A DNA stretch of 64,000 bases from Thalia democratica (Eukaryota), in assembly GCA_965202585.1 (NCBI GenBank), contig OZ241827.1:58280001-58344000 (forward strand), written 5' to 3'. The first letter of the stretch is position 1, and each line of letters opens with the position of its first letter. Of this stretch, positions 3,810 through 64,000 are shown piece by piece. The notes beneath the pieces are model-generated. The model did no database searches, was not told the origin of the DNA, and worked only from the letters and a program-made list of their open reading frames with translations. Made by a program: the position numbers and the translations under genes.

Positions 3810-4967
3810 TTATTGTAAGTCATCAAAAACATCATAAACATTTTTAAATTTTCTCCTTTGCTCCTTAACAACAAACTTCTCCAGCTCGGTTTCTTCGCTC
3901 CGGTCCCTTCTCAAGTGCATCTCGCTCCAATACACTTCTTCCAGCTGCCAAAACCTCGCGTTGGACCAGCTGGTCAGCGGCCTTTCAAGGCAATTCGTTC
4001 GGTCGAACCACCAGCCGGCCTTGTGGTGACCGGCGCAGTCCCAACTCCCAAAACCGTCCACGTCCAAGTAGGGAGTGCTGAAGGAGGAATTGTTCGGTAT
4101 CAGTTCGGTCGAGAACAAATAATTATAAATCTTCGGCTTCACCGAATCGTATGTGATCTTGTGGAAAGGCGACCTGCCCACTTTCACGCCCCGAAAGTAA
4201 AAGTAGCGGGTGTACCGCGTTCCGAACCACAGGGCGTTCACGCTCAGCCTCAGCGTGTACTTTCTCCCGTCGACCGCCGTCACCTGGTTCATTCTCCTCA
4301 GCCCGAGCCAGTACTCGCCTCGCTTGTTGCCGAAGCCCGTCTGGTAATCGGCGTGCGCGCGGAAGCGGTCCCTGTCGAAGACGTTTTCTCCATAAAATCC
4401 CTCCCGCTTCTTGCGCATCACCAGCAAGTACTCGTCTTTATTGCAATTAACTATGACGTCACTTTTGGCGAACGTCACGTGGTAGTCGCCTCCAGCGTAA
4501 CTGCTCTCGTTCAGCCCGCGGTACTTCAGCTTGATCGGACTTTCTCCCTCGGTTACGTCATTCGACACGTAGAGCATCTGCTCGTTCCTGTTCGTCACAA
4601 AGTCTCTGACGTCGCTGCAGTCGCGCGCCTCCTCCCCGAAAAAGCTCTCGTCGTTGTAGCCCGCGTAGCAGAAAGCTTTTCTCCCCGCTCTCCCGTCGCC
4701 CTTGTACAGCGTCTGCGCTCCTCCTCCCTGCGTCATCGGATGCATCAGCGCGCTTTCCCGGCAGCTCCTCAGTTTTTTCCCGCTTCCCAGCTCGTCTTTC
4801 GTCAGCGTGCGCTCGATGCTCTTCGCCGCGCGCATCGCGTACGAGTTTTTAGTGAAGAAAAGTTTTTCCGAAATTCTCTTGTTCGTCTGCTGCGTCGTTT
4901 CGAAGATGTTTTGAGCTGAACCATGAATGGCAAATAAAAATAAGAAAAATATTTGAATTAAACTCAT
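3810..4967 (-). CDS. Secreted fibrinogen C-terminal domain (FReD) protein, 385 aa, apparently single exon
   Basis: Signal peptide MSLIQIFFLFLFAIHGSA. FReD motifs RDCSD, YQTGFGNKRGEYWLGL, YTLRLSV and FSTPYLDVDG..WDCAGHHKAGWWFDRTNC. GC-rich coding island within AT-rich flanks. Confidence 0.88.
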   Translation of the reverse strand: MSLIQIFFLFLFAIHGSAQNIFETTQQTNKRISEKLFFTKNSYAMRAAKSIERTLTKDELGSGKKLRSCRESALMHPMTQGGGAQTLYKGDGRAGRKAFCYAGYNDESFFGEEARDCSDVRDFVTNRNEQMLYVSNDVTEGESPIKLKYRGLNESSYAGGDYHVTFAKSDVIVNCNKDEYLLVMRKKREGFYGENVFDRDRFRAHADYQTGFGNKRGEYWLGLRRMNQVTAVDGRKYTLRLSVNALWFGTRYTRYFYFRGVKVGRSPFHKITYDSVKPKIYNYLFSTELIPNNSSFSTPYLDVDGFGSWDCAGHHKAGWWFDRTNCLERPLTSWSNARFWQLEEVYWSEMHLRRDRSEETELEKFVVKEQRRKFKNVYDVFDDLQ

Positions 4968-15300: not shown

Positions 15301-18300
15301 ATTCTTATATCATAATACTAGTAATCATTTTTGTCGAATTTTAATTTAAATTCTTCGTTTTTTTTAACAAAAAGCCTATTGCAAGTCATCGTTTTTCTAA
15401 AAATGAAACTCATACAACAATGCATCATCTATGTTTTGTACGACACGATAACGCAAAGGTTCTTTCGTGCACCAGCTCCTTAAACCGAACTTTTTTGAGC
15501 GCTTTGCCATTTTTGTCGTTAATTATGCAATACTTATACTTCAATTATACATTTTAAATAACAACACCATTTAACACTCTACTTCAAACAGGTGTGCCGA
15601 CGGTTTCTCCTCGCTCACCAGGGAGCTGTGCGTCGACATCGACGAGTGCGAGATGGGGGGATTCTGCCCTCCGACCCACGCGTGCGTCAACGCCTTCGGC
15701 TCGTTCGACTGCGTCTGCAACTCCACCGACTGCGACAACTCGACCCACGCGTGCGACCTCGCCGACACGTGCGCCGGCAACTCGGTGTGCGTCAGGGTGG
15801 GAGCCGGACACAAGTGCGCGTGCTTGGAAGGTAAATTGTTTTAATTGATATATTTTTCTTTAGATTTTTTTGACAAAATTTAAATAATTTATAAATTTTA
15901 TTTAATTTTTCTTCGCAGTTTGGTTTGATCATCTATAAAATAGTTTAAAAGCCAAGTATATTAGAAAAAATATAACTTATTTCAAACATTTAAGTTATGA
16001 TCTAACCAAACTAGCTTTAAAAAAATTGACATCAGCGTATTTGAAAGCTAATAAAAAAATTCAAGTTATTGTGATTCATCCACACACTAATCAAAAATTT
16101 AAATTATCAAAATCAGCCCTTAATCCTCCGTTTCAAACCCACAGGTTACGCGCTGAACGTGAGCGGCGGATGCGAGAACATCGACGAGTGCAACGCCCAG
16201 CTCTCCTTGTGCTCCAGCGCGGCCAACTGCACCGACACCGACGGTTCATACACGTGCGAGTGTCGGGACGGGTACACGGGTGACGGGTTCAACTGCGAGG
16301 ATTTGGACGAGTGCCAGGGAAATCCCTGCGGCGAGAACGCCACCTGTATTAACCTATCAGGCAGCTTCGTGTGCGACTGCCGGCCCGGGTTTGAGGGAGA
16401 CGGGTACAACTGTTTCGGTTTGTTTTTTTATTGAAATTTTGTTTTTTTTGAATTTAAACGCTAAATGAATAAACAGAGAGAAACGAGTGCGAGGTCGACC
16501 CTTGCGACAACGGTGCCACTTGCGTAGACAGAATAAGTTCTTACGAATGCCTTTGCCCGCCTGGTTTCAGCGGACAAAATTGCTCTGAAGGTAAGTTAAC
16601 AAACCCTGTTTTTTTTGAACACTTTAAAACTTCTACTATTTTTCAGAACTAGTCTGCCAGCAAGAGTGCCATTGCAACGCTCGTTGCGTGTTAGGAGAAG
16701 ACAACCGGCCCAAGTGCGAGTGCATCCCCGGCTTCTGCGGAAACGGTACTTCGTGCAAAGGTATTAAAAGTTCTAACCTAAATTTTCAGCTATTTTTTCC
16801 ACACTAACTAAAACTTAATGCATTTTTACTTTAATAGCCGACATCCCTCTTCCGATGATACTCGCCCCGCCTTTCCCTGTCGACTTCGATGAAGGCAGCA
16901 GCCCCCCACCCGCCATGCTTCCTCCATTCCCGGACTTCGACGACGCAATCACAGCACCGCCGCCCATCACTCTCCCGCCTCCGTTCCCCGAAGACATGGA
17001 TGAAGGTGGTGAACCCGTTCCACCTATACTGCCTCCGCCCTTCCCCGAAGACGATGGCGAAAGCGAGAACGCTGGACCTGTTCCTCCCATCCTTCCACCT
17101 CCGATGCCCGAGGACGATGTACTGAGTGATAACAGTGGCCCGGTGCCACCAATATTGCCACCACCGATGCCAGAAGAAGAAGTTGAGGACTCGAAAGACA
17201 CTCCGCCGCCGATCATTCTTCTGCCACCACCATTCCCAGATGATGAACCGTCAAGCGATAACAGCGGACCGGTTCCACCTATACTACCACCACCCATGCC
17301 AGAGGACGAAGTTGAAGAATCCAAGGATCAGCCTCCACCAGTGATCTTACTACCACCTCCCTTCCCTGAAGACTTGGGAGAGAGCCAGACCAGCGGCCCA
17401 GTACCACCAATCCTGCCACCACCCATGCCAGAGGACGAACCGGAAGAGTCTAAGGATCAACTACCACCAGTGATCTTACTACCACCTCCCTTCCCTGAAG
17501 ACCTAGGTGAAAGCCAAAACAACGGTCCTACTCCTCCTATTTTGCCACCACCCATGCCTGAGGAAGAACCTGAAGACTCTAAGGATCAACCTCCTCCGAT
17601 CATTCTTCTACCACCTCCGTTCCCAGAGGACTTAGGAGAGAGTGAGAACAATGGACCAGTTCCTCCTATTCTGCCACCTCCTATGCCTGAAGATCAATCT
17701 GAGGAGTCCAACGATCAACCTCCACCGGTTATCTTGTTACCACCTCCGTTTCCTGAAGACCTAGGAGAAAATGAAAATAGCGGCCCTGTACCACCAATAC
17801 TGCCTCCTCCTATGCCTGAGGATCAACCTGAAGACTCTAAAGACACTCCACCACCAGTGATTTTGTTACCACCACCCTTCCCTGAAGACATAGGAGAAAG
17901 TGAGAACAACGGCCCAGTACCACCAATATTGCCACCACCGATGCCTGAGGATGAAACCGAAGAGTCCACAGGGCCACCACCAGTGATCTTGTTGCCACCT
18001 CCGTTCCCTGAGGATTTGGACGACGGCCAGAACAACGGTCCAGTACCACCGATCCTACCACCACCCATGCCGGAGGACGAAGTTGAAGGATCCAAGGATG
18101 AGCCACCACCGATTATTTTGTTGCCGCCACCGTTCCCAGAAGAGTTGGAAGACAGCAGCAGCGTCGCGCCTCCGCTTGTGCCACCACCACCTCCCCAGGA
18201 GGACGAGGAAGACGAACCACTTCCGCCCTTCCTGCCGCCGCCTCCGTTCCCCGAAGACGCATTCGTGGTTTGTGCTTTAAGTTGTTGGTTTCTGAGAAAT

Positions 18301-21300
18301 AAGAAAGCATAACTGGAAATGTTAAAAACTTTCAAGTGTAGTTTAAACAGTTTTTCGAGATTCATACAATGTGAACTTGTTTCACATACTCACTTATAAG
18401 CATTAATATAAATATAAACTGTTTTATCGGTTTTTCAGTGTGAAGACGGTGAAATCTTCGACGACAACATGTGCAAATGTATAGGTAAGAGAGCGTTTAT
18501 TAAGTTAACACATTTAAAACGAACTTTGTCAAATTAAATCAGCTTTTGTTATATTTTCAAACCACCATTGCCGTGTTCATCTAAACTCTTTTATATTCAG
18601 TTGTCGACGGTTGCCTGGCCCAAGGTGAACCTTGCAACGACGATGAGGTCTGCGTGGAAAGTTCTGGAAACTTCACTTGCGAGTGTCAATCTAACTTTGT
18701 TAAGTTCAATGGAACCTGCACTGGTAAGTTCGACCTGCGTTCAGTTTTTATGCATAAATTGACTGATTGCATATAGTTTTTTTTAATATATTGCTTTTTT
18801 CTTATTAGTTTTTGTCAAAATACTTTTACTGGATTTAAAATAACTAATTTATAAAAAAAAAACTGTTTAATATAATCTTGCTTGAATAGTTTAAATCATC
18901 CTAACAAACTGTTAGTAATATGTTGTTTAAGTCTTAACTCTTAATCTTTTAGTACAAAGCTACATTTGGTTTCAGTTTAACTAAGCAAATAATTTAAAAA
19001 TGTAGAAGTTAGCTGTTTGACGCACCCTGATGCTTGCAATGAAAATGAACAATGCGCTTTGAGTCTTGAAAGTGGAAACTATACTTGCGTCTGTCCTCAA
19101 GGGTTCACCAATGCCAGCGGAAACTGTAACCGTAAGTAAAGCTTACCATGCAGTAGAGTACTTTGAAATACAATTGTTTATAAAAAGACTGCTCTATGCG
19201 TTTTAAAAATTTTCAAATCAGGGTTTTAACTTTTAACTTATATCCAGCTACATGCGCTGAGCTGAGTTGCACGGCAGTTGAAGAATGCTTCGACACTCAA
19301 ATCGGCGGTCAGTGCGAATGCCAGCCCGGCTACGAACGAGACGAGAACAAAATATGCCAGCGTGAGTGATAAAACGTTTTTTTTTTGTAAAACCGAGAGA
19401 TTTCCTTTTTGTATACAATAAAGCTTTTATAAGCCTTCTAAAAGTGTCTATGAGTTCGAGTGGGATATCACATTATAAACAACATTATTCCTTTTTTTCT
19501 TGCAAAACTAAAGTTAAGTTAAAAAAATATAGTTTTTGTTTTGTTTACTTTTATGAGCGCTGTTTAAATGGAAGTTAATGAGTAAAATGTTTTGGTTTTA
19601 CATAGATTGTTTACGATAACTAAGCTAAGAGACTGAAATAAATTAGTTGTCGATGGATGCGTTGCAAACGGTCTTGAGTGCAGAGAAGATCAAATTTGTG
19701 TTGGAAACCAAATATCTGGAAATTACACTTGTTCATGCAGATCTAACTTTGTTGAATTTGAAGGAGTTTGCACTCGTAAGTTAATACTATTTTAGTTTTT
19801 AATTGTACTTTTATTAAAAATACTTTAAATTTCAGCTGTGAGTTGTCAGACACAGCCTGATGCTTGTAATGCAAACGAAGAATGTTTTTTGAATATTGAA
19901 AGTGGAAATTATACTTGTGTTTGCCCGCAAGGATTTACTACCTTTAATGGAATTTGTAACCGTAAGTAAAATTTCGATACAGTAAAAAAAAATGTTTTAA
20001 TTCATCTAAAAAAAAAATTAAACACATAAATGTATAACAATACAAGTTTTGCTTATATTTTGTTTAATAACATAGTTATTATGTATTAAGAGAAACTAAA
20101 TGAGTATTTTGCTGTTTGAGCTATAAATGTAGTTAACATTTGTTTAAACATTATTAGCAGTAAACATTTTTTAAACACTTTAATATAAAGATACGCTATT
20201 TATTTTAACAACAAAACACTTAAGTTTTTAGCGATCATCATATAACTGTTTTAAATTGATCAAAAAGGTTTATAGTTGATAATTTTACAGCAACTTGCTT
20301 GAATGTGAATTGTTCCACAAATGAAAATTGTGTTGATCTTGAAAATGGTGGACAATGTCAATGTAACGATGGTTACGAAAAAGATGAAGCTAATATCTGT
20401 CAAAGTTGGTTTTTTAAATTTTTCTAAACTTTACAGTATATAAGTTTTAAAGTTTTAGTTTGATTTAAAACAAAAACAAACAAATACTATAAAAGTTTTT
20501 GTTTTTGGCAAACCTGAAGTATGTATAGCTAAATCTAGATACTGTTAAACGTTTTATGAGTTTTTTAAAAACACTAATTACATTTTAAAGTTAAAAATTA
20601 AAAAAATAATAAAAACTATACTAAATACTCCTTAGTATAGGAAGCAAACATTCCATACACTTTGAACTTTTGTTACATAAACTATTTTAAAGCAGATATT
20701 AGTTTTATCTACAAAATTTTATTTTTATTAAGCTCTTATCTTAATGTATCATAAATTGACACGTTTTATAACTTTATAACTTTAGTTCATATGTATGTAC
20801 TAATTTATGATGCAACCAATAAAAGTTAATATATTCATCATCTCCAGTTGTTGACGGATGCGTTGCAGACGGTCTTGAATGCAGACAAGATCAGATTTGT
20901 ATTGGAAACCAAATATCTGGATACAACTGTTCATGCAGACCCAACTTTGTTGAATTTGAAGGAGTTTGCACTCGTAAGTTAATATTATTTTAGTTTTTAA
21001 TTGTACTTCTATTAAAAATATTCTTAATTTCAGCTGTGAGTTGTCAGACACATCCTGATGCTTGTAACGCAAATGAAGAATGTATTTTGAATATTGAAAG
21101 TGGAAATTATACTTGTGTTTGCCCGCAAGGATTTACTACCTTCAATGGAAACTGTAACCGTAAGTTAAACAAAAATATAGAACTTTTACAGCTAATGTAG
21201 TGAGTTTTAAATTCATGAGTTTTTATTTATGTTAACACAAAGTTATACTCTGATAATCGTACTAAGTGCCTTTCAAGCTTAGATTATAAACATATTTTCT

Positions 21301-39300: not shown

Positions 39301-42300
39301 TTAAAATACAAACTTTTAAATAATAACTTGAGAATTTATTTTCAGACTTGCTCTTCATGCAGTACAGCTAAATAGTTTATTTAAATTATCCAAACAGCTC
39401 CCGAGGCACCGACGAATCTTGTCATAACAACTGACTCGGTCGTTTACACGAACGCTCAGCTGTCATGGTCAGCACCAGTTAACGGTAGCGTTGACAGTTA
39501 CCTGGTCAGTACAAGGCCCGAGGTTGAAGTTTCTGTAGGTAAGTGTATGATGTGTGAGTCACTTAAAAAAACTAGTAAGGAATTTTCGATTCATTTAACT
39601 TTTCCTAAAAACTTTTATTATAAAGTATTATTTTATAGTTCAAAAATTTTTATATAGTGTTTTTTTACTTCAAGAGTTTTGTTTTTTTTCAAGTATATTG
39701 AATCAATGAAATCAATTTCAACTACCTTATAAGAAAATTTATTCAAATATTTTTTCAGACAACAACTCGAGAACAGCAAGTATCGTTGGTCTTGTGCCAG
39801 GCCGAACTTACTCCTTCACCGTTACTTCTTTTTTCCAAGGAATTGAAAGCGCGGGCGCAGTACTAACACGTGAGATTTTTTTTAAAGTAAAATCTAAGCT
39901 TATCCAAAATATTAAAACACACAAAGTTATTTACAACGTAAAACACTAATTGATTCGTATATTGACTTTCTCAAACTGCAAAAAACGTACTACTTATACG
40001 AAAACGTGCTTAAATAAACAAAAACAACGAGTTGTTAATCGGTTGGATAATTTTAACCTACAACTGTAAATACACATTTAACAGATGTACTTCCAGTTAC
40101 ACCCACTCCTGTTACAACTACTCCGGAAACAACAACAGATGGTAAGTTTTGGCAAGTAAGAATAACAAAACAGAGTCTTTAGAGAAATCGAAGAAAAAAT
40201 GTACAATTTATACTTTAAATAAATGAATTAAGCAATTGTTTGAACTTAGTTTAAAAACATTGTTCTAGAAAAAAAAAATTTAATGTTGGGGTTCTTTTGT
40301 GATGAATAAGACAATTTGAAAAATTAAAAGTAAAAACAGTTGCACAAAAAACAAACTAATATCTTTCAATTTCACAATATAAAAGTCAACAACTTAAACT
40401 AATGTTCAGTTATACATTAGTATTCAAACTTTATATAATAGACATAAAAAAAAAACAATTATGAGTTTAATTTTAAGTTTAAAAATTAATCATAAAGAAT
40501 TAAAAATGAACTTAAAAACAAGTGTAGTGATAATTAACGCCTTCAAAAAACTTTACACCTCATAATGACAATAGGACCTATTATAATCACAACAACTGAG
40601 GATCCTTTGGTTACCACGACAACTGAAGAACCTGTTGTTACTACGACAACTGAAGAGCCTATTGTTACTACGACTACTGAAGAACCTGTTGTTACTACGA
40701 CAACTGAAGAGCCTGTTGTTACCACGACAACTGAAGAACCTGTTGTTACTACTACAACTGAAGAACCTGTTGTTACAACGACAACTGAAGAACCTGTTGT
40801 TACTACGACAACTGAAGAACCTGTCGTTACTACGACAACTGAAGAGCCTGTTGTTACTACGACAACTGAAGAGCCTGTTGTTACTACGACTACTGAAGAG
40901 CCTGTTGTTACTACGACAACTGAAGAGCCTGTTGTTACTACGACAACTGAAGAGCCTGTTGTTACAACGACAACTGAAGAGCCTGTTGTTACCACAACAA
41001 CTGAAGAACCTATTGTTACTACGACAACTGAAGAACCTGTTGTTACTACGACAACTGAAGAACCTGTTGTTACTACGACAACTGAAGAACCTGTTGTTAC
41101 TACTACAACTGAAGAACCTGTTGTTACAACGACAACTGAAGAACCTGTTGTTACTACGACAACTGAAGAGCCTGTTGTTACTACGACAACTGAAGAACCT
41201 GTTGTTACTACTAACACTGAAGAACCTGTTGTTACAACGACAACTGAAGAACCTGTTGTTACTACGACAACTGAAGAGCCTGTTGTTATAACGACAACTG
41301 AAGAACCTGTTGTTACTACTACAACTGAAGAACCTGTTGTTACAACGACAACTGAAGAACCTATTATTACTACAACAACTGAAGAACCTGTTGTAACTAC
41401 TACAACTGAAGAACCTGTTGCTACTACAACAACTGAAGAGCCTGTTGTTACTACGACAACTGAAGAACCTGTTGTTACCACAACAACTGAAGAGCCTGTC
41501 GTTACTACGACTACTGAAGAGCCTGTTGTTACAACGACAACTGAAGAACCTGTTGTTACTACGACTACTGAAGAACCTGTTGTTACTACGACTACTGAAG
41601 AGCCTGTTGTTACAACGACAACTGAAGAACCTGTTGTTACTACGACTACTGAAGAACCTGTTGTTACTACGACTACTGAAGAACCTGTTGTTACTACGAC
41701 AACTGAAGAGCCTGTTGTTACCACGACAACTGAAGAACCTGCGGTTACCACGACAACTGAAGGTACTGGTTAAGACTAAGGATGCACTTGCGGCTGCATG
41801 AAGAAGTATTGGCACACTTACTACAAAAGCTTGGTATCAAAATTAATAAAATCTAACAAAGGATTATTACAGATTGTTTGTTTTAACCACTAACAAAAGT
41901 TTTGTGTTCGCACTGATAAGCATGAATTTTTAGATGGCTAGTTTTAACTTTGTTTAACTTTGCCAGCTTAAAGTTGTGTTTTTACTAAAAAGTAGTTGTT
42001 AGATTTTTTTTGTTAACATAGATTAGTTTTACAGGTTTACTTCGTTGAAAGAGCGCTAGTGTATAGTAAGCTTTGACAAACATAAAACAACATTGATTAC
42101 ACTAACACTACAATCAGTCTTAACATATTTTCTAAAATTATTTGCTTTTTATACTCGTGACCAACCAAATGTTTGTTACAACTTAATGTATGTTTGTGTT
42201 CATGTGCATATCAAATTTGTTGTAAACACTTGCTTTTAAATGCATCCATGAATTGTGAAAAATAAGTATCTATGACGTTTAAGTTTTACTATCTACTTTT

Positions 42301-60996: not shown

Positions 60997-61535
60997 TAAC
61001 GTGCAAATTGAAAATGCAAAACACGCCCCTGCACGTTTGCTTAAGATCTAAACTATAAAATTAAGACTTTAAAACTTAGTTTAGCTTCACCTTTCATGCC
61101 ACCAGGGTTTTGCTAACTACTCTCGACACAGTAAATTGTCTAACAGTTGTAAATATAATCATTTATGATTTTTGCTAATTTCTTTAAAATTTTCATTTAT
61201 ATGTAAAATATATCTTACTTTATTTATTTATAATCAACAAAAGCAAAACGAGTAGAATTCTTGGAGTTTTATTGTTGAAGCGATGAAGTAAGTACGTTTA
61301 AGAAATTATGATTGCCAAACAAACACATATAAACTAGAAAATATTTTAACTTTTTATATCTATAGTCATTAAGATAAGATTGAAGAAATACCTATTTGAA
61401 ATAAACTTATAATGAAAATGTACGACGATGCTCCACAACTTTTAAAAACATCATTAAAGCAAGTTTTATCATGAAGATAATATATAATTACACAAAAAAC
61501 ATAACAATAAAAATCGAGTTGCCTGGCTTTTAGAA

Positions 61536-61973
61536 CTACCGTTCGCCACGGATGCGACCGGCAAGCTGCATGTCCTTGGGCGAAATGGTCACTCTGTTGG
61601 CGTGGATGGCGCACAGGTTTGTGTCCTCGAACAATCCCACCAGGTAGGCTTCGGCGGCTTCTTGAAGAACGCTGATTGCTGCCACTTGAAAACGCAGGTC
61701 GGTTTTAAAACGCTGTGCGATTTCGCGAACGAGGCGCTGGAAGGGCAACTTGCGGATCAGAAGCTCAGCTGACCTCTGGTACCTGCGTATCTCGCGAAGA
61801 GCCACTGTTCCTGGGCGGTAGCGATTGGGCTTCTTGACGCTGCCAATTTTACTAACTCTGGGTGATCTTTTACCTCTAGGATTTTTGACACCTCCGACTT
61901 TGTTACCTCCTGGTGGCCCATTACCTCTGTTACCTTCTTCTTCAAATCTACGGGGCCTCACTTTTACTTTCAT
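61536..61973 (-). CDS. Divergent histone H3 variant (H3.3-derived fold, novel N-terminal tail), 145 aa
   Basis: Unmistakable histone fold: [21 protein letters not shown]...[17 protein letters not shown]...[26 protein letters not shown]. Uninterrupted ORF. Confidence 0.93.
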
Positions 61974-62067
61974 GTTTACGTTAGTTCAAACACCTGTTAA
62001 AAGTATACCTACTGCTTTCAGAGCTGATAAACTTTTAGTTAACTTGTAACAAGTATTAGATTCTACA

Positions 62068-62076
62068 CTGATTGGG
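62068..62076 (-). promoter_or_regulatory. Candidate CCAAT/NF-Y box upstream of the H3 variant
   Basis: CCCAATCAG on the minus strand about 95 nt upstream of the ATG. A single short motif only. Confidence 0.4.
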
Positions 62077-63784
62077 CAGACTTGTATTTCGGTTGCCTAA
62101 GTGAAGTTTAAAATATAATTATCTTTAATTTTTTTTCGAATAAAAATTGTGCAATAAGCTGTTATTAATTTTTGAATTCTAGTATGTATCTTAATAAATT
62201 GTACCATGGTGAGCAATCTTTAACACAAAAAAAAGTTTTTCACATGAAACTAAAAAGCTTAAAAACAAATAGTCCTACTTTATAAAACTTAAGAATGCAG
62301 GTAAATAAGTTATTGATGCTAATATAAACCTACTCCTAAAGAGTAACCATTTAGTTCAAAGTACTACTTGATAAAATAAATTTATTTAAAAGTTGACTCT
62401 TTCTGCCCAGACTGAACCTAATCTTACTTCGTTAAAGGTTATATACAAATGTAGTAAAATATAACACTTATCATCATTGATAAATTAAAGTTTGCATTTT
62501 GTCAACTCTGAAAACAGATTTGGTAGTTTATATAAAAAAACAGCAATGAATATATATTATAACTTTTTTGTCTAAAATTAAATACTTTTTTATAAATTAT
62601 TTTGCTGGAATAAGAAATACTGTAACATTGATTAGGGAGTTTACCAATCAAATGGTATGACTATTAAATAGCCTTCAGTGAGAAAAACTTATGAAACTTA
62701 CTATATACCTGCAACTAAGTAAAATTAAAAGAAAATAAAAACACCATTACAAAGTACACAGTAAATAAAAAATATTTTTGTTTACAACCTTCAAATTAAA
62801 TACCACGTTTTTCAAAAGGATTTTGTAACATAACATTTTAACTACTAACTTAAACAGTTTAGTCTTACCATAGATACACTTTTAGTATTTTCTTAATACT
62901 TTTCATAAATGACAAAACTAAACAGCTTATTTTATTTATGTAGACGAGTTTACTCAGAGTATAATATTTTACACTTACTGCGCTTAAAATACTTTTGTTG
63001 TACTTGTAGAGCTTAAAAAAGTATACATTTAATTATTTTTTGCGTTTGTACTTTGTCCAGTCTTTTTTTAAAGCGTTCAATTTGAAAACTTTACAAAATG
63101 TATCTACAGTTTAAAATGTATTATACAGTGTTATACAAAATAAGTATCGGTTATAAATTGTAAATGTTTTTATAAAAATCAGGAAACTGTTACTTTTGTA
63201 TTTGATTCTAAAACACCATTACAATTGAATATGTTGACTAAAGTACTCGATCCTTTAACAAAACATTTTTTAAATTAAGCACTTTAGATTTTTTACATCA
63301 TACGTCCACATATTATTTTGTTTATTAAAAACACCGTAAGTTATATAAATATCGCCACAATATTTACTAAATCATATTCGTATACATTCTAGCTGTATCA
63401 ATTTATAACGTAAAAAGTAACATTTAATTTGAACAGTATACAAATCTAATAAATTAAACGATTTAGTTTTACCAAGTAAAAACAAATGTATAAAACAAAA
63501 AATATTTAAGTGCTTTAAAAGTGTTTAAGTTTTAAATAACTATTTTTTATCAAATTTCCTACAGTTTATAGATAAGTAAAACTAATTCAACAATCTTTAA
63601 AGCATTACTATCACAAAATTCCTGGAAAATTAGTTTTAAATTTGGGAGTTTATTACTTGCAACTCTCTTATTAAAAATGTAATAAAAATTTTACAACTAC
63701 CTTTTTTTACTATATTTATTCTAAACAGTTAGTATCAAAGAAACATTTAAATAAACAAATGATATGCAATAAAAACGGTTCACT

Positions 63785-63931
63785 ATCATCTCTAACTCGA
63801 TCATTTCTAATCCGATCAATTCTAACTCGATCACTTCTTACCCGATCACTTCTAACCCGATCATTTCTAACTCGATCACTTCTAATACGATCACTTATAA
63901 CCCGATCACTTATAACCCGATCATTTCTAAC
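63785..63931. repeat. 15-bp tandem array (ATCACTTCTAACCCG), about 10 copies
   Basis: Nine full degenerate units and one partial unit are directly visible. Confidence 0.9.
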
Positions 63932-64000
63932 AATTTATAGTTCAACAAAAGTTCATGATTTATATTTTGATATTTATAGTTGTAAATATCAGGTTTTTAT

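Follow-up and report, generated by a model that had tools for sequence, protein, structure and literature searches.

Several known variants of histone H3 invite comparison with the locus considered here, among them variants of the tunicate Oikopleura dioica and of plants. In O. dioica, the gene for H3t.3 is an orphan that has no introns, retains only a degenerate stem-loop, and is enriched in testis, and its product carries 10 substitutions in the fold, including changes around K79 and at I124 (PMC3156773, Moosmann et al. 2011). The same species has H3sh, a truncated H3 for which expression was not detectable and which is considered a pseudogene (PMC3156773). The sperm-specific H3.10 of Arabidopsis (HTR10/MGH3) has a tail that cannot take K27 methylation, and it contributes to the loss of H3K27me3 in sperm (PMC8015243). 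The main heritable chromatin marks sit on the N-terminal tail, and for this reason the tail is nearly unchanged in those animal H3 variants of our comparison that are not centromeric. Here we describe a gene for an H3-like protein with an entirely different tail, which has, in our judgment, about an even chance of being a lineage-restricted, replication-independent tunicate H3 variant like Oikopleura H3t.3.

The window analyzed is a stretch of 64,000 nucleotides (C2:58280001-58344000), and the candidate gene within it is single-copy in the 800-Mb assembly. The candidate is an intact, single-exon ORF running from ATG to TAG (Table 1), and the translation of 61536-61973 on the minus strand given in a preliminary description of this DNA was reproduced exactly. 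Reading of the ORF and 3' flank in the reference haplotype revealed no stop, frameshift, or poly(A) tract. The predicted protein matched the Pfam Histone family PF00125 over residues 32-142 (E 9.5e-41). The best-scoring solved chain was mouse H3mm7, followed by H3.3, and the alignment was gap-free from residue 39-40 to 145. The Pfam match and the gap-free alignment to H3.3 and H3mm7 identify a fold of the H3 type. The AlphaFold2 monomer had a low mean pLDDT of 49.5, with helices at the expected positions. Candidate residue n aligns with H3 residue n-11, and the tail therefore exceeds the canonical one by 11 residues, close to the figure of about 10 given earlier. The C-terminus reads ...RGER and lacks the usual final residue.

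Table 1 Features of the candidate H3-like locus, with positions numbered within the window.
Feature	Position	Strand	Basis
Complete H3-like ORF, 145 codons and TAG	61536..61973	-	ORF, Pfam, and solved-structure relatives; one copy in the 800-Mb assembly
Novel N-terminal tail, codons 1-43	61845..61973	-	Boundary of paralogue homology; no match elsewhere in the genome
Two in-frame 51-nt units, approximately codons 21-37 and 38-54, probably an old internal duplication	61812..61914	-	Appearance; match at the 51-nt offset
H3 residues 35-134 (end of tail, alpha-N, histone fold), codons 46-145	61539..61838	-	Alignment
TTTTAACAG, possible acceptor for 3' splicing or trans-splicing, 20 nt upstream of the ATG	61994..62002	-	Read from the sequence
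3' flank lacking a histone stem-loop	61400..61535	-	Rfam scan

GC content is about 25% in the flanking DNA and climbs to 54% in the candidate's fold, and the fold GC3 of 0.66 was the highest among the H3 genes compared. Across the fold the candidate is 79-84% identical to the other H3 genes of the genome. Identity to the genome's own H3.3 is 84%, with 12 differences within the 100 fold codons (46-145). Thirteen changes relative to H3.3 had been listed in the preliminary description (G34S, H39N, K56R, T58A, D77R, S86V, G90S, A91V, S96A, K115N, M120S, I124M, and R128G), and all of them were recovered in comparisons with the genome's own H3.3 genes, L003 and L005. They are not all equally characteristic of the candidate. 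A96 is found also in the canonical H3 of this genome and in many paralogues, so S96A is not candidate-specific. T58A, M120S (T in other haplotypes), and R128G occur in the reference haplotype only, and the sequenced animal is heterozygous for R128G and for S/T120.

The tail is basic, rich in glycine and proline, and contains no K4, K9, or K27 context. The motifs ARTK and ARKS are absent, as had been reported, and so is KQTARK; the candidate does not have the canonical ARTKQTARKS...ARKS tail. In a DNA search of the candidate against its own genome, identity to other H3 copies was 77-81% and began only at query position 253-263, that is, from codon 42-46 onward. A six-frame search of the same genome with the tail peptide matched only the tail itself. 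Local alignments of the tail to the 5' regions of twelve paralogues likewise detected nothing in common with their tails or promoters (z < 1). The earlier claim that the tail has been replaced is thus borne out for DNA and peptide. Beyond this genome, a search with the full-length protein yielded only P0023 and P0048 as near relatives, and in a tail-restricted search of 5.8 billion proteins the tail was shared only with P0023. An exact-pattern scan of JGI metagenome contigs for further orthologues returned 0 matches.

Two properties of the tail DNA bear on its history. Its GC content at the three codon positions is 0.51, 0.51, and 0.23 (Fisher p = 0.0026), which is the pattern left by evolution as coding DNA under the AT-biased mutation of this genome. 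Furthermore, no other offset gave as good a match as 51 nt (17 codons), at which 24 of 36 bases agree (p = 0.002 by base shuffle and 0.007 by codon shuffle). A gapped local-alignment test of the same duplicated region was not significant (p = 0.27). The match at the 17-codon offset suggests that the second copy of the K36 motif (GGVK) is probably an old in-frame 51-nt duplication of the K36-proximal segment.

The genome contains more than 150 other H3 loci, and perhaps up to several hundred, many of them in tandem arrays, and the ARTKQTARKS-type tail is kept in every other H3 copy that was translated. Long tandem arrays of near-identical H3 genes with periods of about 6.6-10 kb are located at C7:14.67-14.91 Mb, at C8:46.19-46.31, 46.98-47.12, and 54.37-54.45 Mb, at C10:25.64-25.77 Mb, and at C7:31.37-31.41 Mb. 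At least six distinct paralogue groups are present, and the histone 3' stem-loop is found in some groups and absent from others. One pair of H3 genes, L004 and L009 (C1:47354561-47354935 and 47391109-47391492), has a tail that is seven residues longer (…GGKAPRKPVGGKALKIGSMAARKS…), STAVM in alpha-2, and a C-terminal G. At the DNA level the candidate's fold is matched best by this pair (81%), whereas the tails are unrelated, and no stem-loop was found at L004. Of two other loci, L056 (C342:25321-25653) and L055 (C2:81885722-81886063), one has a shifted-frame tail (VNRRQGSKETARHQGRS…) and the other is missing roughly its first 20 codons, so that each is probably a broken copy.

The preliminary description called the candidate H3.3-derived. 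The H3.3 markers A87, A88, and I89 are indeed present, G90 and A91 are replaced by S and V, and residue 31 has no counterpart. The derivation comes down to the AAI motif, which several multi-copy paralogue groups of this genome also have, some of them stem-loop-bearing; AAIG, too, occurs in multi-copy paralogues with a stem-loop. Phylogeny of the H3 genes, which had been proposed as a check, did not join the candidate to the H3.3 genes of the genome. In the maximum-likelihood tree the candidate clade falls, with 100% support, outside the rest of the H3 genes, and its branch measures 0.24 substitutions per site. Its dS to every paralogue is at least 0.9. The long outside branch and the high dS point to an old duplicate for which no parent can be named.

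The immediate setting of the gene is that of an orphan. No other histone gene was found in the 64-kb window or in 6 kb beyond it. In an Rfam scan the histone 3' stem-loop (RF00032) was present at six paralogue loci and gave no match at E <= 1 at the candidate locus. A solitary gene without this stem-loop is an H3.3-type trait, and the candidate has it. Capture by a retroelement was considered and rejected: the surrounding 10 kb contains no LTR-like long direct repeat or retroelement-sized ORF, and the 3' flank has no poly(A) tract. Upstream, a stop codon is present in all three frames between TTTTAACAG and the ATG, and the counterpart of this element in L031, one of two Tara Oceans plankton metagenome contigs that carry the candidate locus (the other is L032), is retained as TTTCAACAG. 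We infer only that TTTTAACAG would fit a short 5' UTR, perhaps a trans-spliced one. Conservation is lowest between positions -163 and -45 (77-85% identity), and no conserved proximal promoter is present there. A search for sequencing runs that contain the stretch listed three, none of them recorded as RNA; all three are DNA-like, with flat depth over the flanks, and their contigs yielded allelic variants only.

Elsewhere in the window, a tandem array with a 15-nt period, reported as 8 overlapping repeat windows, extends over about 175 nt at 63770-63946 and falls within an 89-codon ORF whose translation shows LTRS/LIRS repeats. Two long low-complexity, coding-like repeats are found at 40543-41815 and 16815-18365; one is a TTTEEPVV-type repeat of Thr, Glu, Pro, and Val of about 400 codons, and the other is Pro-rich, spans 485 codons, and is open on both strands. 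A single-exon ORF of 385 codons at 3810-4967 (-) has a signal-peptide-like start, and its C-terminal part resembles a fibrinogen-related domain (…GEYWLGL…DCAGHHKAGWWF…).

The mitochondrial COX1 gene of the assembly (C1833:8315-9631; L047:1501-2817) contains five in-frame TGA codons and has AGA or AGG at invariant glycine positions, for example in GGFGN, HLAGVSS, and DPxGGGDP. Reading of AGR as glycine together with the in-frame TGA codons indicates the tunicate mitochondrial code and places the animal among the tunicates. Given that the locus also occurs in two contigs from Tara Oceans plankton, a pelagic tunicate is most likely. The nearest database relatives of this COX1 are sequences from marine catalogues, at 86-92% identity. 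COX1-like fragments with many TAA and TAG stops were also found on nuclear contigs, at C4:56842736-56945724 (L048 and L049) and C757:31294-32138 (L050), and these look like nuclear copies of mitochondrial DNA.

The foremost alternative to a working variant is that the candidate is a decaying relic, a long-functional H3 that lost its original 5' end and promoter by rearrangement and is now drifting, with the open frame surviving by chance and through ascertainment. We consider this quite possible, at somewhat short of an even chance. The absence of the stem-loop at the locus and of a conserved proximal promoter would be expected of such a gene. Ascertainment has to be kept in mind as well, in that the candidate was noticed for being intact in a genome with hundreds of H3 loci. 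The composition of the gene speaks against this alternative, insofar as the codon-position signature of the tail and its old in-frame duplication imply a long coding history and the GC3 of the fold has not decayed.

Comparison of haplotypes provides evidence on both sides. The ORF is intact in the haplotype of the window, in the second allele of the sequenced animal, and in L031. The second allele differs from the first by E12D, G22R, G23V, S131T, and G139R (with R128 restored) and by one silent change, so that five of the six differences in the coding sequence of a single animal alter the protein, a point in favor of a relic. Also consistent with a relic are replacements, in different haplotypes, at residues that are otherwise invariant or nearly so in H3: T80I, E105Q, and L126F in both L031 and L032, Y99N only in L031, R116I only in L032, and R128G in the reference haplotype. 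In L032 there is a 1-bp insertion in the tail, and GTG takes the place of the ATG at the extreme end of the contig; this frameshift and lost start codon likewise favor a relic, with the reservation that L032 is a single metagenome contig of uncertain quality. An internal ATG in L032 could still yield a protein with a shorter tail.

The tail itself is nearly unconstrained, with about ten replacement and four silent differences (replacements E12D/A, P21T, G22R, G23V, K25E, K30N, S37P, P38S, K42I, and I43V). The preliminary description had stressed the second GGVKNP copy, the KRSPR site, and R128G. The first two are present in the reference, and none of the three holds across haplotypes: the lysine of the second GGVK is N in L031 and L032, the SP site reads KRPSR in L032 and is changed by P38S in the run labeled organism B, and R128G is restricted as described above. 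What this variation leaves conserved is no more than the tail's overall nature, basic and Gly/Pro-rich. In the 600 bases that cover the tail and upstream DNA, divergence between the sequenced animal's two haplotypes is about 2.3%, and over 61200-62400 divergence from the window is 5-10% for the organism-B run and for the contigs from Tara Oceans. Values of this size within an animal and between samples point to very high nucleotide diversity in the lineage.

Selection on the fold was estimated with a three-ratio branch codon model applied to 100 fold codons in 17 sequences. Omega was 0.022 for the background H3 genes, which served as the reference class, 0.088 for the stem of the candidate clade, and 0.50 for its crown. 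For the stem, both omega = 1 (LRT 21.6) and equality with the background (LRT 6.95) were rejected. For the crown, equality with the background (LRT 24.3) and with the stem (LRT 6.1) was rejected, and omega = 1 was not (LRT 1.5). Despite dS values of at least 0.9, only about 12 fold residues differ from the paralogues. The fold was strongly constrained for most of its history and is now weakly constrained. The candidate protein evolves faster than other H3 genes, at about 20 times their omega, with the ORF retained. A relic would account for a crown omega of 0.5 that cannot be distinguished from 1 in the fold, and the nine fixed fold changes could have accumulated neutrally in as little time as about 0.04 substitutions per site, which is of the same order as the divergence between haplotypes.

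A comparison that takes the flanks as the neutral reference has more power than the fold-only branch test, and it gave a different outcome. L031 is colinear with the window over 1.5 kb, with identities of 93.0% upstream, 95.7% in the coding sequence, and 89.8% downstream. Pairwise maximum-likelihood estimates were dS 0.088, dN 0.032, and omega 0.37 (LRT 3.9 against omega = 1). Divergence at synonymous sites (0.081) was close to that of the flanks (0.076), whereas divergence at non-synonymous sites (0.032) was 0.42 of the flank rate. By Fisher tests, non-synonymous sites differed from the flanks over the whole coding sequence (p = 0.003) and over the fold (p = 0.013); the difference was not significant for the tail. 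Gaps were distributed in a similar manner, with 0 indels in the 438-nt coding sequence and 7 gap openings in 880 nt upstream. The reduced non-synonymous rate and the absence of coding indels indicate that some purifying selection persists, far weaker than that on the other H3 genes of the genome. The preliminary description would have taken a dN/dS near 1 as evidence of a young pseudogene. The ratios found were 0.37-0.5, indistinguishable from 1 in the fold-only branch test and below 1 when the flanks were the reference.

The reduced non-synonymous rate and the absence of coding indels count against a drifting relic. From 7 gap openings and 81 substitutions per approximately 1,080 flank bases, and a nonsense fraction of 0.03-0.04, we estimate that about three disabling events per lineage would be predicted, and the haplotype of the window, the second allele, and L031 contain no indel or stop in the coding sequence. 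On the side of a working gene, then, are the constraint on the fold, the constraint relative to the flanks, the intact haplotypes, the coding-like tail, the undecayed GC3, and the precedent in Oikopleura, which together make a case that we regard as evenly balanced. On the data at hand, a working variant and a relic cannot be told apart.

Two other explanations assume that the gene is translated and differ in what the protein does. It could act outside bulk nucleosomes, for example as a decoy that titrates chaperones or readers, or as a partner in another histone-fold complex. The patch recognized by DAXX and HIRA is changed (G90S, A91V), and residues that contact DNA differ (H39N, K115N), in keeping with this idea. 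However, the residues of the H3-H4 and H3-H3' interfaces are almost all kept, and the fold is as close to the other H3 genes of the genome as given above. We consider this explanation very unlikely. That the candidate is the centromeric H3 (CenH3, or CENP-A) of the species, as its divergent N-terminal tail and its status as an orphan gene without a stem-loop might suggest, is extremely improbable and had already been dismissed in the preliminary description, for loop 1 is not lengthened, the residues Q68, F84, and T107 have been retained, and a fold identity of 79-84% to the other H3 genes of the genome compares with about 50% for CenH3 folds (PMC3156773).

For a replication-independent tunicate variant, a possible course of events can be outlined. 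An old H3 copy of the AAI type would have come to stand alone, as an intronless gene that lacks the stem-loop of histone mRNAs. Roughly the first 33 of its codons would have been replaced, or remodeled beyond recognition, to give a basic, Gly/Pro-rich tail of 43-44 codons, partly through the in-frame 51-nt duplication adjoining K36. If translated, the protein would be expected to pair with H4 and to enter nucleosomes independently of replication. Such nucleosomes would be unable to carry marks at K4, K9, K14, K18, K23, and K27, which takes in methylation of K4, K9, and K27 as well as the usual acetylations of the tail. Methylation of K36 would probably also be poor owing to G34S, as the tunnel through which SETD2 threads G33-G34 of H3 fits only glycine (PMC4973290). 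In addition, K56R would block acetylation of K56, K115N would remove a positive charge and a DNA contact at the dyad, H39N would remove a contact at the DNA entry point, and G90S and A91V would be predicted to alter the patch read by H3.3 chaperones.

By analogy with O. dioica H3t.3, expression of the candidate would most likely be in the germline. A more specific proposal is that nucleosomes blind to K4, K9, and K27 marks and impaired in K36 methylation serve in the tunicate germline to erase chromatin states or to shield them from the methylation systems. We think this proposal rather unlikely. If it were correct, the candidate would parallel plant H3.10 in an animal and would take the same principle considerably further. 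More generally, if the gene is expressed, it would represent a natural experiment, a nucleosome beyond the reach of the proteins that write and read methylation at K4, K9, and K27, and it would extend the innovation in histone variants documented in the tunicate Oikopleura. If it is instead becoming a pseudogene, it would be nothing out of the ordinary where a genome carries H3 copies by the hundreds.

Among known systems, the candidate is most readily compared with H3t.3 of O. dioica, a male-specific replacement variant. Both are tunicate, orphan, intronless, and lineage-restricted genes with a degenerate or absent stem-loop, and each has about 10-13 substitutions in the fold, among them the neighbors of K79 (here D77R, and T80I in other haplotypes) and I124. 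H3t.3, unlike the candidate, keeps the canonical tail with three substitutions only and is highly enriched in testis (PMC3156773), whereas the tail of the candidate is replaced to approximately H3 residue 32. The resemblance is a likeness only and does not imply orthology. H3sh, the model for a relic, is also a tunicate H3 copy with an altered N-terminal part, but it is truncated and lies within a cluster, whereas the candidate is full-length, has a longer tail, and shows measurable constraint. Arabidopsis H3.10, an H3.3-like variant, offers a parallel for the mark-blind function proposed for the candidate. H3.10 differs in being altered only near K27, with the rest of the tail kept; it is a plant protein of independent origin, and its expression and function have been demonstrated.

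The mammalian H3.3-derived variants H3.Y, H3.5, and H3t/H3.4 and mouse H3mm7 are, like the candidate, lineage-specific H3 copies with few changes in the fold. They are young, their fold changes loosen DNA ends or destabilize nucleosomes, and, unlike the candidate, they all keep the ARTK...ARKS tail. An unrelated, fast-evolving tail on an H3-type fold, encoded by a gene without a stem-loop, is a combination that the candidate shares with CenH3, although only the latter has an extended loop 1, changes of the F84W type, and a fold whose identity to H3 is about 50% (PMC3156773). The candidate otherwise behaves like lineage-specific, replication-independent variants of H3, which are often germline proteins. 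As read from its sequence, it is replacement of the whole tail that sets the candidate apart from O. dioica H3t.3, H3t, H3.5, H3.Y, H3mm7, and H3.10, and such replacement is otherwise typical of CenH3.
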